This document shows positions 1,021-8,370 of a stretch of DNA of 8,445 nucleotides, in pieces. Within the stretch, counting starts at the first letter, position 1; each line of letters starts with the position of its first letter. This DNA is from Fonticula alba ATCC 38817. Lineage: Eukaryota > Protista > Nucleariida. A model generated the notes under the pieces. That model saw nothing but the letters and a program-made list of their open reading frames with translations, did not search any database and was not told the DNA's origin. Location of the stretch: the NCBI GenBank assembly GCA_000388065.2, contig KB932215.1; one strand, written 5' to 3'. A program made the position numbers and the translations under genes.

Positions 1021-1466
1021 GTACCGAATGCCCCTCCTCCCCCTCCTCCGCCCTCGCGCCTTGCCTTTGCAGCCCGTGTGCCTCGTTTGTTTCCCCTCGC
1101 TTCGCCTCGCGTTCTCGTCTGCCACAACACAATGTTCGTGCCCTCCGCGCCGCCCTCGCCCCCGGCCCCTCTTCCTCGCCGGGGCCCGCCCGCCTTGCCG
1201 TCCTTGCCCCCCGCCCCGCCCCCCCCTCGCATGCTGCACGCTGTTCCCTTGCCCCCTTCGCTCTGGCACCGCGCCCGCGAGCTTGCCCCCACATACACAC
1301 ACACACCGCCCCGCCCACTTGTGCTGCCCTGCCGGCGCGACGCCTCCTGCCCTGCCCGGGCGTGAGCCCTGCGTCGCGCCTGCGCGCCGAGAAGCGAACG
1401 CTGACATGCTGTGCCGCCCTGCCGCCGCCGCCGCCGCCGCCGCCGCCGCCCCGATCCCCGACATAG
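1021..1466 (+). other. Probable 5' UTR intron of the J-like gene (acceptor well supported, donor uncertain)
   Basis: Branch-like GCTGAC at 1400..1405, no AG until CATAG 1462..1466, and the ATG starts at the second base after the acceptor. The donor could be GTACCG at 1021 (followed by pyrimidine-rich, intron-like sequence) or GTGAGC at 1362. Confidence 0.5.
1421..1450 (+). repeat. (GCC)10 trinucleotide repeat between branch point and acceptor
   Basis: Read directly from the sequence. Confidence 0.95.
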
Positions 1467-1467
1467 A

Positions 1468-1843
1468 ATGTATCCCTTCGTGGATTACTACCAGGTGCTC
1501 AATGTCCCGAGGGATGCCTCGCTGGCGGACATCCGTGTTGCGTGCGTTCCCCCCCCCCCCCGCGGCCGCTGCTACCCGTTCACTGGTGGGGCGGCCAGGC
1601 TCTTCGCATGCTGGCCTCCTTTTGCGACTTCTTCCAGTGCCCCCGCGCTCACACACCTGCACACATGCGAACGCACATGCCTCCTCGGCCGCCGGCCCCC
1701 TTGGCCCCCCGCTCTACAGCTTCATGCAGAGCGTCTGCGTGGCGGCCGACCCGCTGAAGAGCCTCGATCGCCTGGCCGCCGGTGCGCATGACCCGCATGA
1801 CCCGAACCACCCGGGCCACGATGATGAGCATCCCCACGACCCG

Positions 1844-1893
<50 letters not shown>

Positions 1894-2334
1894 GCATGAG
1901 CACGAGCACGACCACAAGCACAAGCATCACCACCACCATGAGCACCACCACTACCTCCACCGGCCGGAGGGTGGTGCCCGGCGCGGCCGCGTGGCCGGCG
2001 CCGCCAGCGCCGCCCAGGCCACCTTCTACACTAGCCAGAGCTCGCCGGCCGTCAGCCTGGCCGGCGCGGCCCAGGCCCAGGAGACCTCGCGCATTGTCAC
2101 CGACATGTTCCTGACCGCGTATCGCATTCTGTCTGATGGTGCGCATGCTTTTCTCGCGCGCATGGTGTGGCGGTCGGGGTGGGCCGGGCAGCGTGACCGG
2201 GAACGATGGGGGCCCTCGCCTGGGGCCAGCCGTGTGCACGCACACCCGGCGCATGCGGCCGGCAAATATGCACGAGGGGGCAAGGCCCCGCCTCGCGACC
2301 TATTGCTAACAGCAAGTCCATCGCGCGGGCCCCG

Positions 2335-2368
<34 letters not shown>

Positions 2369-4300
2369 CACGCAGCCACCACGCGCCGCATCTACGACCA
2401 GTTCATCCGCCAGTGGGAGTCCAAGCTGGCGCGCGTGTGCGCCCAGACGTGCCGCTCGTCCGGCGCCGCCGCCGCGGCCGCCACCGCCGGCATGTCCATC
2501 GAGGAGAGCCACCAGCGCACGCGCCTGGCGGTGGCCTTCGCGGCGGCGGCCGCCGCGGCCGCCCGCAACCGCGCCGACGTCGACACCCAGCTGCACGTCC
2601 GCCGGCGGGTGTGCATCGCGGCGGCCGCGCGCATTGGCCGCCAGCGCCGCATCGTGCGCAAGGCCGGCCGCCAGGCGGCCCTCGTGGCCCAGACCCGCCT
2701 GTGCACCGGGTCCCAGCAGCGGTGCTCGTGGACCGGCGGCTCGGCCGACGGCAGCCCCGGCTGCCGGGCCCGGCGCCCGGCCCCGGCCACCCCGCCCCGC
2801 GCCCCGGCCCCGGGCAGCAGCTACGCCTCGGTGGCGGCGGCCGCCGCGGCCGTCGGCGCCTCGCGCCTGGCCGCCAGCCGCAAGGTCTACCTCTTCAGCA
2901 GCAGCGGCAGCGGCAGCGGCAGCGGCAGCGGCAGCAGCGCCCTGCCGGCGGCCACCATGGAGCTGAAGGCGCGCGCGGCGGCCGGCACCGGCGGCAGCCT
3001 GACCGTGGTCCCGCCGCCCCCGCCGCCCAAGTGCCTGAAGCCCACCATCGTGGTCCGGGGCTTTGACCCGGCGGCGGCCACCATGGATGCCGGGCTCTTC
3101 CAGGGCCCGGTGTACATCCACGAGGCCGGCTCGCAGGAGGTGGCCCGGTCGACCTTCGGCGCGGGGCGCCGCCGGCGGCCGACCGCCACCCCGCCCCCGC
3201 CCCCGCCCCCGCCCCTGCCGATGGCCAGCAGCCCGGCCGACAGTGTGGCCGGCGGCGGCAGCCTGGTGGCCCCGGCGCCGCCGGCCAAGCCGGTGGCCCC
3301 GGCCCCCGCCGCCCGGCCGGTGACCATCCGGTCGTACTCCACCCTGGCCGAGGTGGCGGCCCAGATCGCGCGCGATCGCTTCCCCCACGTCCTGTCGGAT
3401 GCCATCACGGTGACCGAGTTCTCGAAGGCCGCGGCGGCGGTGGCCGCGGTGGCCGCCAAGCCGGTGGCCCCGCCGCGCCCGCGCCGCGCCTCCTCCCCCC
3501 CGACCGCCGCGGCCGCCGCCCCGGCGTCGTCGCCCCACCCCCCGGCCAGCCTCCTGTCGCTGGCGGACCTGGCCGTGTCGGTGGCCACCGCGGCCCTGGC
3601 CGCCGCGGAGCGCCGCCACCGCCGCACCCCGGGGGCCGCGCCCGCCGCCGCCGCCGCCCCGGCGGTGCCGGCCCGCGCCGCCGCCGCCGCCCCCCCGGCC
3701 CCCGCCCCCGCCCCGGCCATGGCCCTCGACGCCGGCAGCCAGAACATGCGCTACGGGTCCACCCCGCGCGGCTGGCTGTCCGCCGACAATGCCGCCGAGT
3801 ACTATGACCTCCTGGCCATGACGCCCCCGGGCCCGGGCCAGCAGCCGGTCTGCTGGCGCCGGCTGGTGTGGATCCGCCAGGCCGACGGCAGCTGGGTCCA
3901 GCTGCCGCCCTGCCCGTCGCCGGCGCTGCTCGAGCGCCGGGCCATGCTGCTGAAGTCCCCCTTCGCCTCGCTCCGGCAGAAGGTCAGCAACCAGGCCGCC
4001 CTCCGGGCCCTGGATCGCAACCCGGAGGTCTCGCGCCGGGTGGCCCTGGTCACCCTGAGCGACGACCCGCGCAGCCAGGGCGCCTCGGCCTGCGGCTGGC
4101 GCGGCGCCGAGCACCCGGCCCCGGCCCTGGCGCGCGACTCGTCGCCGTCGGCCTGCCCCGCCGTGGCGGCCGACGCCGCCCCGGTGTCCACCCTCGGCGG
4201 CAGTGCCATCCGCGAGTCCCGGCCCCCGGCCGGCCTGACCACCGGCACCCCGGGCGTGTGGATCCGCACCCACGGGTCGTGGACTTGCATCCGCTGCTGA
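1468..4300 (+). CDS. J-domain-like (DnaJ-related, HPD-less) protein with His/Asp-rich insertion and long Ala/Pro-rich tail; join(1468..1541,1720..2138,2376..4300), 2418 nt, 805 aa
   Basis: The spliced translation gives MYPFVDYYQVLNVPRDASLADIRVA|FMQSVCVAADP...TDMFLTAYRILSD|ATTRRIYDQF. This matches J-domain helix I/II (E. coli DnaJ [21 protein letters not shown]) and helix III/IV (AYEVLTDSQKRAAYDQY). Both junctions are GT-AG with compatible phases (gc|c, g|cc) and each restores a domain motif. Exons 2 and 3 have strongly G/C-ending codons. The stop is TGA 4298..4300. Track ORFs 1411..1791 and 1028..4300 each hold only part of the gene. Confidence 0.8.
1542..1719 (+). other. Spliceosomal intron, 178 nt, phase 2
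   Basis: Donor GTGCGT at 1542, branch-like GCTCAC at 1647..1652, acceptor CTACAG ending 1719. Removal joins DIRVA to FMQSV, continuing J-domain helix II and moving into the long frame. Confidence 0.8.
1844..1891 (+). repeat. (GACCAC)8 coding hexanucleotide repeat encoding (Asp-His)8
   Basis: Read directly; it continues as GAG/AAG-CAC/CAT variants encoding EHEHEHDHKHKHHHHH. Confidence 0.95.
2139..2375 (+). other. Spliceosomal intron, 237 nt, phase 1 (3n, stop-free)
   Basis: Donor GTGCGC at 2139, branch GCTAAC at 2305..2310, CA run, acceptor CGCAG ending 2375. Removal creates AYRILSDATTRRIYDQF, the conserved J-domain C-terminal motif. Confidence 0.85.
2335..2371 (+). repeat. Interrupted (CA)n microsatellite immediately before the intron acceptor
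   Basis: Read directly from the sequence. Confidence 0.95.
2897..2938 (+). repeat. (AGCGGC)5 with flanking AGC codons, encoding an SSSGSGSGSGSGSS linker
   Basis: Read directly from the sequence. Confidence 0.9.
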
Positions 4301-4460
4301 TTTGGCCACAGGGGGGGGGGGGCGGGGGGAGACATGGCTCCGGGCGTGGCCGGCTGTGCCCGCGCCCGGCCCCCCGTCCCTGCTGCTGCTCGCGCACTCC
4401 CTCTTTCCGCGTCTGCCTCGCCCGCCTGGCCGTGTGTCCGTGCTCGCGTGTCTGTCTCAC

Positions 4461-4477
4461 TGTGTGTGTGTGTGTGT
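4461..4477 (+). repeat. (TG)8 microsatellite downstream of the J-like stop codon
   Basis: Read directly from the sequence. Confidence 0.9.
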
Positions 4478-5280
4478 ATGCACAGGGGCACGCACAGTGC
4501 CATGCCGACGGATGATGGGTGGGCGCTGGTAGGCGGACCCGGGGCGCGGCGCGGCCCGCCGCGCGCGAGGGCACAACACCAAGAGGCGGGGACTCCCGAG
4601 GGGGGATGGGCACATCGCCTCTTTCCCCCCGGCGCCCCGGGTCCCCGCTGTCCTCCCTCCAATCATGTGTGTGTGGCCAGCGGTGCCTTTTTTTTTGTCG
4701 GGCCGCCGGCCAGGCGTGTGCCTGCTCTCTCGGGGAGGGAGCCTTGCTGCTCCTCCGACGGGGGGAAGGCCCGTCTGCCCGGGCGTGCGACGGGGAGAGA
4801 GAGGCCAGGGGTGAACCGCGCCTCGCCTGCGAGAGCCGCACCGCTGCATGTGCGTGCGCCCGCGCCCATCTCGCCCCCCCCCCCGTGAGAATGGCACATA
4901 CATACGCGCACGATGGTGCCGGGCGGTCCTCAGCCGCGCCACCGGGTCTCCCGCGCGTGTGCGCCCCCCTCCATCCAGCGTAACGGGAAGGCGCCGCGTG
5001 CCTTTCGCCTGCTCGAAGATAGAGAGAAAGTTCTCCGCGCGCGCGCACGTGTGTGTGCGCCCGCGCTCAGGTTTTAAAACACAAGCATATAAAAGAACCG
5101 GAAACGAAAGACGATGTGGCGGTATCTTCGCGCGTGCTGTGACCACACGCGGGGCCCCCCGGGCGAGGGCAACACCTCCCAGTGCACACATGGCAAGGGG
5201 ACGGCGGGGACGCGGGGGGACGGAAGGAGACCGGGCCGGTGCGCGGCGGCGAATCCACAGGGCGAGGGAAGGGACGTCGA

Positions 5281-6225: not shown

Positions 6226-6930
6226 NNNNNNNNNNNNNNNNNNNNNNNNNNNNNNNNNNNNNNNNNNNNNNNNNNNNNNNNNNNNNNNNNNNNNNNNNNN
6301 NNNNNNNNNNNNNNNNNNNNNNNNNNNNNNNNNNNNNNNNNNNNNNNNNNNNNNNNNNNNNNNNNNNNNNNNNNNNNNNNNNNNNNNNNNNNNNNNNNNN
6401 NNNNNNNNNNNNNNNNNNNNNNNNNNNNNNNNNNNNNNNNNNNNNNNNNNNNNNNNNNNNNNNNNNNNNNNNNNNNNNNNNNNNNNNNNNNNNNNNNNNN
6501 NNNNNNNNNNNNNNNNNNNNNNNNNNNNNNNNNNNNNNNNNNNNNNNNNNNNNNNNNNNNNNNNNNNNNNNNNNNNNNNNNNNNNNNNNNNNNNNNNNNN
6601 NNNNNNNNNNNNNNNNNNNNNNNNNNNNNNNNNNNNNNNNNNNNNNNNNNNNNNNNNNNNNNNNNNNNNNNNNNNNNNNNNNNNNNNNNNNNNNNNNNNN
6701 NNNNNNNNNNNNNNNNNNNNNNNNNNNNNNNNNNNNNNNNNNNNNNNNNNNNNNNNNNNNNNNNNNNNNNNNNNNNNNNNNNNNNNNNNNNNNNNNNNNN
6801 NNNNNNNNNNNNNNNNNNNNNNNNNNNNNNNNNNNNNNNNNNNNNNNNNNNNNNNNNNNNNNNNNNNNNNNNNNNNNNNNNNNNNNNNNNNNNNNNNNNN
6901 NNNNNNNNNNNNNNNNNNNNNNNNNNNNNN
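6226..6930. other. Assembly gap (705 N)
   Basis: Run of N preceded by a poly-G tract. All track ORFs that span it are artefacts. Confidence 1.
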
Positions 6931-7027
6931 GCCCTGTCCCGACATGCGCGGTCCCCCGGGCCTAGACACGCATCGCACCCGGCAATCGGCCCAGCTTCCA
7001 ACGAACCCTGGGCCGCGCACGCGTCGA

Positions 7028-7311: not shown

Positions 7312-7381
7312 GCTTGCCGGCCCCCGCCGCTGGGTGGCGCCCTCCGCATTCGCACGCGCCCACGCGCTCGCCCCTGGACCG

Positions 7382-8370
7382 ATGGCCGCACACCTGCAAG
7401 TCCTCTCGGCCGGGCAGTTCGACGCGCCGCCGGCCCTGATCCTGCACACCCGCAACCGGCGCTATCTGATCCAATGCCCGGAGGGGTCGCAGCGCCTGCT
7501 GGCCGAGTATGGCGTGGCCCTCGGCAAGCTGGACACCATCCTGCTGACGCGCGTGGCCCCGGCTCCGGCAGACATGCCGGCCGTCAATCCCCTGGCTGCT
7601 GGCCTGTGGTGCCGGTCGATCGGCGGTCTGCCGGGGCTGGCGCTGACCCTGGGCGATGCGGGCCACGCCCTGCCGGCCTCGCAGATGGCGAAGCCCTTCG
7701 GCCGCGGGGCCACCGGCGGCCCGGGCGGGTCGTCGAATTCGCCCCAGCGCCAGTCGCGCCTGGATGCTCCGGTTCCCGCCGAGGCTGAGGCCGAGGCCGC
7801 GGTGCCTGCCGCCGGCCCGTCCACCCCGCCTGCCGCCGGGCCGGCGGACGACCTGGACCGGCTGAGCCCACCTGTGCCGGCCCCACCAAGCCCGCCGGCT
7901 GCCTCATCGGCCGCGGCCATGGGTGCTGTCTCGGCCGCGCGCAAGCGCTCCTTCGGCGAGGCCTTCTTCCGGTCTCCGAGCATCCTGGCGCATGGGCCCT
8001 ACCGGCGCCCGGGCCAGCATGGCCTGCGCTTGGTCGGCCCGGACGGCGTGGCCGACATCTCCAAGCTGGTGTCCTTCTTCGTGAACAAGTACGGCCCCTG
8101 TCCGGTGGTGGCCATTGGCATGGGTGGCCGGGCTCCGGCTGCCCGGCGGGATCATCGTGCTGACCCTTCGCCTGCTTGCATTTTTTTTCCCGCCTCACTC
8201 CGCAAATGTGTGGCCGCCCCGCCGCCCTGTAGGAACCACATGCCGCTGCAGCCCTTCGCCCTGGAGCCCGGGGATATCCTCTCCGATGGGGATGTCCTGC
8301 TGACGACGCTCCCGACGGCCGAATGCTCCGGCGCCTGTCGCGAGCGCGGGTCGCTTGCCGACTCGGACGG
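7382..8370 (+). CDS. ELAC2: tRNase Z long form (ELAC2/Trz1 family), N-terminal part; join(7382..8088,8233..8370), continues beyond the window
   Basis: Frame 2 from ATG 7382 reads MAAHLQVLSAGQFDAPPALILHTRNRRYLIQCPEGSQRLLAEYGVALGKLDTILLTR...LWCRSIGGLPGLALTLGDAG...GLRLVGPDGV. This matches the tRNase Z(L) N-terminal signature (RYLFNCGEGxQRL..E...KL.+L+.IFLT...W.N+GGLPG+.LT) as I recall it, followed by the GP motif. The frame has no stop to the window end. The true start may lie further upstream. Confidence 0.85.
8089..8232 (+). other. Spliceosomal intron in tRNase Z, 144 nt, phase 2 (3n, stop-free)
   Basis: Donor GTACGG at 8089, branch GCTGAC at 8159..8164, T-rich tract, acceptor TGTAG ending 8232. 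Spliced reading is VSFFVNK|NHMPLQPF. Confidence 0.7.

Follow-up and report, generated by a model that had tools for sequence, protein, structure and literature searches.

A degenerate J-like domain with a histidine-rich low-complexity insert directly behind its HPD remnant in an orphan protein of Fonticula alba

An 8,445-nucleotide stretch of contig KB932215.1 (the window, numbered from its first letter) comes from Fonticula alba ATCC 38817, a cellular slime mould-like amoeba and kin to fungi, and carries on its plus strand a gene that is real, spliced and transcribed and that encodes an 805-amino-acid protein restricted to this lineage. Judged by sequence, the first ~175 residues of this protein are a degenerate J-like domain: their homology to J-domains and the loss of the HPD (His-Pro-Asp) motif are both evident, and a low-complexity insert of about 100 residues with a tract of 48% His lies between the decayed motif and helix III. 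We consider it probable that the catalytic loop of this domain ceased to function and, afterwards or at the same time, took up a low-complexity expansion driven by replication slippage.

Joining positions 1468-1541, 1720-2138 and 2376-4300 yielded an open frame of 805 codons in a window characterized by 70-84% G+C, GT..AG introns, and (CA)n and (GCC)n microsatellites. Exon 1 (1468-1541) begins at the first in-frame ATG past an upstream stop (1468-1470), encodes J-like helix I and the first half of helix II (MYPFVDYYQVLNVPRDASLADIRVA), and gave the Pfam and PDB matches described below. Exon 2 (1720-2138) encodes the end of helix II, the HPD remnant, the insert and helix III in an open frame with a third-position G+C of 0.85-0.88, compared with an intron G+C of 0.70, and its last 40 nucleotides (2099-2138) are present in a spliced RNA contig. 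Exon 3 (2376-4300) supplies helix IV (ATTRRIYDQF, 2376-2407), followed by ~630 residues of Ala/Pro-rich orphan sequence and a TGA stop codon at 4298-4300. This splice pattern, which had already been proposed in a sequence-only reading of the window, is the only one that preserves both the frame and helix III.

The RNA belonging to this genome consists of two small 2012 runs from one study. Within them, a 211-nucleotide contig without mismatches lay on 2099-2138 and then on 2381-2546, placing the junction at 2138/2376, so that splicing of intron 2 (2139-2375, 237 nucleotides, GTGCGC...CAG; donor g/GTGCGC and acceptor acgcag/c at 2375, the slash marking the exon boundary) was confirmed. Exon 3 was represented by contigs at 2381-2546, 3731-3977 and 4152-4309. 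For intron 1 (1542-1719, 178 nucleotides, GTGCGT...CAG; donor gc/GTGCGT and acceptor ctacag/c at 1719), we infer splicing from the frame correction needed between the J-domain start in frame 1 and its continuation in frame 2, from the donor and acceptor sequences, and from a branch-like CTCAC at 1648-1652, 68 nucleotides 5' of the acceptor. A CTAAC occurs at 2306-2310, 66 nucleotides 5' of the intron 2 acceptor, and directly before the acgcag acceptor, in the usual place of a pyrimidine tract, (CA)18 at 2335-2371 occupies the last 40 nucleotides of that intron. The 22 RNA runs dated 2026 under the same species label belong to another organism; in the two of them that were tested, reads fell only on G/C homopolymers.

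Third-position G+C proved to be a very good coding marker in this genome, reaching 0.97-1.00 in one frame across 2376-4297 and remaining near 0.65-0.80 in all frames within introns, upstream of 1468 and downstream of 4300; the coding signal is likewise absent from intron 1. The value is lower (0.85-0.88) in the J-like exons and the insert (1468-2410) than in 2411-4297, for which relaxed selection, short-exon constraints and differing sequence age are candidate causes. A single-exon open reading frame (ORF) at 1028-4300 starting from ATG 1406 was rejected, because the J-domain begins in a different frame and no third-position signal is seen in this one upstream of 1720. The upstream ATG itself (1406-1408), which lies in the frame of this artefactual 1,090-codon ORF, has no coding-type signal around it and would open an overlapping upstream frame if the transcript began farther 5'. 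A minus-strand gene was rejected as well, with splice sites and homology both lying on the plus strand.

The homology of the N-terminal region to J-domains is solid, with a likeness in sequence beyond chance. In what follows, Pfam scores refer to single exons and local-profile scores to the spliced protein; the curated threshold of PF00226 is 27.8 bits. Exon 1 alone (24 residues) matched a single Pfam family, DnaJ, at 18.2 bits (E = 0.0027, profile positions 1-18), and its ten PDB matches all fell on the N-termini of J-domains, among them those of DNAJA3, DNAJB2, DNAJB6, bacterial DnaJ and human Hsp40 (best E = 0.009). Against a local profile built from 81 DnaJ J-domains, the native spliced protein scored a total of 21.3 bits (single-target E = 1.4e-8), with two pieces aligned in order: positions 5-26 with residues 6-27, and positions 52-69 with residues 157-174. 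The latter piece runs across the confirmed exon 2/3 junction and is the evidence for J-like helix III (2060-2138; …AQETSRIVTDMFLTAYRILSD). When ~4,600 internal deletions were scanned, the score peaked at 35.7 bits upon removal of residues 40-138, compared with 19.1 bits for the undeleted sequence, and adjacent boundaries held 33-36 bits. Taken alone, the helix III piece had no Pfam or PDB match and the helix IV piece no Pfam match, and an exact-pattern scan of metagenome contigs with the helix III coding stretch returned nothing.

Helices I-IV occur in order, with D6-Y7-Y8, L11, V13, I22, A25-F26, A158-Y159, L162, D164, R168 and Y170-D171-Q172 falling on invariant or near-invariant columns. 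With these core positions of all four helices kept, the helical hairpin probably still forms. The earlier reading had described a split J-domain with an unusually long distance between its two aromatic anchors, and both descriptions held up: from the F codon at 1721 to the Y codon at 2120 (F26-Y159), the distance is 133 residues, compared with 29 between Y25 and Y54 in E. coli DnaJ, and the exon 1 and profile matches identify a relative of J-domains cut by an insert of 99-104 residues in the helix II-III connection.

In active family members, the helix II-III loop is the surface that stimulates the Hsp70 ATPase. Here, the place of the HPD-R/K-N motif is taken by DPLKS (1748-1762; D35-P36-L37-K38-S39), on which the profile alignment sets its h-P-d-r-n, and the gapless register instead puts A-D-P at the HPD position; in neither register does His or Asp stand where it belongs. 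The domain had been read as lacking HPD, and indeed neither His33 nor Asp35 is retained (H33 becomes D or A, D35 becomes L or P, and N37 becomes S), nor does the string HPD occur anywhere in residues 1-185. The same reading had the HPD loop replaced by the insert, which needs correcting, for the DPLKS remnant still occupies the place of the motif and the 99-104-residue insert comes directly after it. Helix II has changed as well, with K23, Y25 and K26 replaced by V24, F26 and M27, respectively, and with Q28 standing in the gapped alignment for R27 of DnaJ. R23 is retained, the next basic residue after it is K38, and the positively charged helix II face formed by K/R at DnaJ positions 22, 23, 26 and 27 is absent. 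Also retained are I22, A25, A158-Y159, L162 and the Y-D-Q of helix IV.

The functional interaction of Hsp40 with Hsp70 is reported to be lost invariably when HPD is altered, and residues 25 and 26, R36, N37, F47 and L57 are further important positions (PMC1906734). Of the residues found here at these positions, F26, K38 and L162 are either kept or conservatively changed, in contrast to M27 and S39, and F47 has no clear counterpart. With DPLKS in place of HPD-R/K-N, and V and M substituted for K23 and K26 of helix II, stimulation of the Hsp70 ATPase is not to be expected, and the domain, as far as its residues can tell, most likely no longer performs this function. The proposal of a chaperone cofactor is therefore difficult to sustain, with H33, D35, K23 and K26 all gone and HPD changes reported to abolish the Hsp40-Hsp70 interaction (PMC1906734). 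By sequence, the domain falls into the functional class of HPD-less J-like domains, and its present role is probably that of a structural or protein-binding module.

The low-complexity insert (1763-2059, ~99 residues, 40-138, or 104 by anchor distance) lies between the HPD remnant and helix III and coincides with the best deletion in the profile scan. Its His/Asp/Glu tract (1787-1960) holds 28 His, 14 Asp and 5 Glu in 58 residues (48% His), precisely the string translated in the earlier reading, and is encoded by NAN-CAY hexamers (CAC 22, CAT 6, GAC 12 and GAT 2); the other ~41 residues of the insert are Ala/Gly/Ser/Arg-rich. Tandem Repeats Finder reported a period-6 array at 1834-1955 with 20.3 copies (score 125), within which a perfect (GACCAC)8 microsatellite core of eight exact hexamer units (1844-1891) has GAGCAY, AAGCAY and CACCAY variants at its sides, together with an exact 9-nucleotide duplication at 1785-1804. 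Across the 18 hexamer units of 1844-1951, the His codons differ at three sites, all synonymous C-to-T changes; a fourth counted mismatch sits in the non-His YL unit, and the partner codon of the hexamer varies at its first and third bases but always remains NAN, encoding D, E, K or H. Contigs ~90% like 1844-1926 (up to 1,081 nucleotides, depth up to 93) were also recovered from the two 2012 runs, and because they continue into unrelated sequence, His/Asp repeats of the GACCAC type are transcribed at other loci too.

The insert is repetitive in nature and coding-like in composition. Its frame is open throughout, and its third-position G+C of 0.87 differs from the intron G+C of 0.70 (p = 5e-5) and is indistinguishable from the 0.85 of the J-like helices. 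The non-repeat flanks of the insert show the same tendency on their own: their coding frame has 0.88, whereas the two remaining frames have 0.78 and 0.73 (p = 0.006). Together with the open frame and the synonymous-only differences among His codons, these values bear out the earlier impression of a tract that is in frame and looks coding, and they suggest that the insert is translated.

In the mechanism that we propose, a hexanucleotide microsatellite (GACCAC and its NAN-CAY variants) and Ala/Gly/Ser-rich sequence would have grown by replication slippage directly behind the dead HPD site, giving rise to a presumably disordered loop of ~100 residues. Such an expansion may have been tolerated at this position because the ends of the helix II-III hairpin are neighbours and the loop has no catalytic role left to disturb. 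A loop of 48% His is predicted to bind Ni, Zn or Cu and to shift its charge near pH 6, and this metal binding and pH titration would be a by-product of composition.

Several points weigh against the reading of a decayed domain with a slippage-expanded loop. None of the contigs from the two 2012 runs lay on exon 1, on intron 1 or on the unique parts of exon 2 upstream of 2099, and, because exon 1, intron 1 and the unique parts of the insert are thus without RNA cover, we infer translation of the tract rather than observe it. The local profile was drawn from proteobacterial DnaJ only. Furthermore, the synonymous-only changes among the His codons hint at selection to keep His rather than at pure neutral drift.

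The last of these points is the best support for a different explanation, in which the His/Asp loop, lying where Hsp70 was once contacted, would have been selected for its response to metal or pH, turning the J-like domain into a metal-buffering or metal-switched scaffold. A composition of 48% His alternating with acidic residues, a partner codon that stays polar or charged, and the location of the tract exactly at the functional loop are all consistent with this explanation. However, the synonymous-only pattern comprises three to four sites in a repeat whose units copy each other, and the eight perfect hexamer copies point to recent slippage. Among families, the tract resembled only the His loop of ZIP transporters (Zip, 16.2 bits vs a cut-off of 35.1), a compositional and sub-threshold match, and the NCBIfam matches were compositional noise. 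No orthologue that would show conservation was found with exons 2 and 3 or with exon 3 alone, and with HPD, K23 and K26 gone, no known Hsp70 contact is left for switching. We therefore regard a selected metal- or pH-responsive element as unlikely. Its most far-reaching form, in which a selected and translated metal/pH sensor on the former Hsp70-activating loop would alter the docking of the orphan protein to Hsp70 or another partner upon metal load or acidification, and could belong to a wider histidine-based metal physiology in Fonticula, deserves little credence on the present sequence.

It could also be argued that the J-like region is a decaying relic without a role, in which the insert and the lost motifs both arose from relaxed constraint, the orphan C-terminal part alone being functional. 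The loss of HPD and of two basic helix II residues (K23 and K26), the score of just 19-21 bits for the undeleted domain, and the lower third-position G+C of the J-like helices than of the rest of exon 3 (0.85 vs 0.98; Fisher p = 3e-6) fit such a history. Set against these are the core hydrophobic and helix-capping positions that have been kept (DYYxVL, I22, A25-F26, AYxIL and RxxYDQ), the 35.7 bits attained without the insert, a frame that is intact over two introns, and the splicing of intron 2, in view of which a mere relic seems quite improbable to us.

A further alternative concerns the mRNA itself. The only good donor-like site within exon 2 is a GTGCGC at 1782-1787 on the plus strand, which is probably unused. 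Joined to any AG inside exon 2, this donor would give products of 46-80 residues ending at a stop; its sole frame-keeping acceptor is that at 2375 (1782-2375), which deletes helix III. The event that had been named as fatal to the sequence-only reading, removal of 1782 to ~2050 by splicing, is incompatible with the open frame, and the donor at 2139 is the one used in RNA. That the main mRNA joins the 1782 donor to the 2375 acceptor, leaving a 686-residue protein with helices I, II and IV only and the tract in a minor transcript, is very unlikely: although the ten nucleotides at 1781-1790 (GGTGCGCATG) are identical (10/10) to the confirmed donor at 2138-2147, the 594-nucleotide intron would preserve the frame and RNA cover of 1782-2098 is absent outside the repeat, the RNA contig joins 2138 to 2376, positions 1961-2137 have an exon-like third-position G+C in the correct frame, positions 2060-2137 encode a helix III that matches the profile jointly with exon 3, and a chance GTGCGY is expected about 0.5 times per 419 nucleotides at this composition by our estimate.

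The decayed J-like domain can be placed among known systems by its order of parts. With canonical J-domains (PF00226; E. coli DnaJ, human DNAJA3 and DNAJB1), it shares the N-terminal placement and, in order, DYYxVL(G/N)V in helix I, A-(Y/F) in helix II, AYxxLSD in helix III and RxxYDQ(F/Y) in helix IV. In contrast to them, it has DPLKS for HPD-R/K-N, V and M for K23 and K26, no clear counterpart of F47 of the KFK motif, an insert of 99-104 residues between the loop and helix III, and no glycine/phenylalanine (G/F) region, zinc finger or C-terminal client-binding domains afterwards. With the HPD-less J-like proteins (Pam16/Tim16 and the "type IV" proteins of plants and Plasmodium), it has in common a J-domain-related sequence without HPD; this likeness is one of functional class only, and no sequence relationship to those J-like families was shown. 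By analogy with these J-like proteins, the domain would be expected not to stimulate Hsp70 and to act via protein-protein contacts. Pam16 is small and mitochondrial and has its J-like domain at the C-terminus, whereas the present protein has 805 residues, carries its domain at the extreme N-terminus and has no evident presequence. We are aware of no sizeable low-complexity insert at this site in the Pam16 or "type IV" families, and limited literature searches turned up none.

The His/Asp-rich tails of SlyD, HypB, UreE and Hpn bind Ni/Zn. The tract shares with such metal-binding sequences (Hpn, the SlyD and HypB tails, UreE and ZIP loops) a very high His density and interspersed Asp/Glu, yet it has no homology to them, scoring below every family threshold, and it is internal to a domain rather than a tail and encoded by a microsatellite. 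Low-complexity inserts in the conserved domains of repeat-prone genomes are similar in that slippage has produced a loop of biased composition at a surface connection of the fold; the present insert differs from others in being His/Asp-rich and in its position at the loop that is catalytic in active family members. In a limited search, no ~100-residue His-rich insert directly behind a dead HPD site was found described in the literature. HPD-less J-like domains and low-complexity domain inserts are both known, and what is new is a ~100-residue His-rich insert directly behind a dead HPD site.

The remainder of the protein offered no relatives. Exon 3 (640 residues) had no match among 1.84 billion representative proteins and no Pfam or NCBIfam domain, and a word search with exons 2 and 3 gave just two weak His-rich chance matches. 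A word search with the C-terminal region found nothing, the annotated self-protein included, and because this self-protein is absent from the protein search results, the locus may be unannotated or annotated differently. The C-terminal 200 residues had no usable match in the protein atlas, and a single-sequence AlphaFold prediction of the C-terminal 193 residues was unusable, with a mean predicted local distance difference test (pLDDT) score of 38. No orthologues were found with exons 2 and 3 together or with exon 3 alone, for which reason conservation of the His tract has nothing to be compared against.

Elsewhere in the window, RNA contigs at 4327-4885, extending at least 590 nucleotides past the stop codon and showing no coding signal, could represent a long 3' untranslated region or a separate non-coding transcript, and an A/T-rich patch at ~5070-5095 could be a polyadenylation region. 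An assembly gap (a run of N) spans ~6230-6960. A coding-type third-position G+C signal reappears at 7380-8100, in the frame of a minus-strand ORF (7462-7983) or in a plus-strand frame; the ORFs at 7400-8200 had no Pfam match, and this region is probably another orphan or low-complexity gene. A search of the window against Rfam gave no match.

If the His loop should prove to be conserved or metal-responsive, it would mean that a J-like fold has been put to new use as a module switched by metal or pH, which we have not found described. If, instead, the reading of a decayed J-like domain with a slippage-expanded loop is true, the consequence for Fonticula would be a gene model corrected or added, as a matching annotated protein was not found in databases. 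More broadly, the locus would then be a clear case of repeat slippage colonising a loop after the loss of its catalytic motif, and it would provide a data point on the origin of HPD-less J-like domains.

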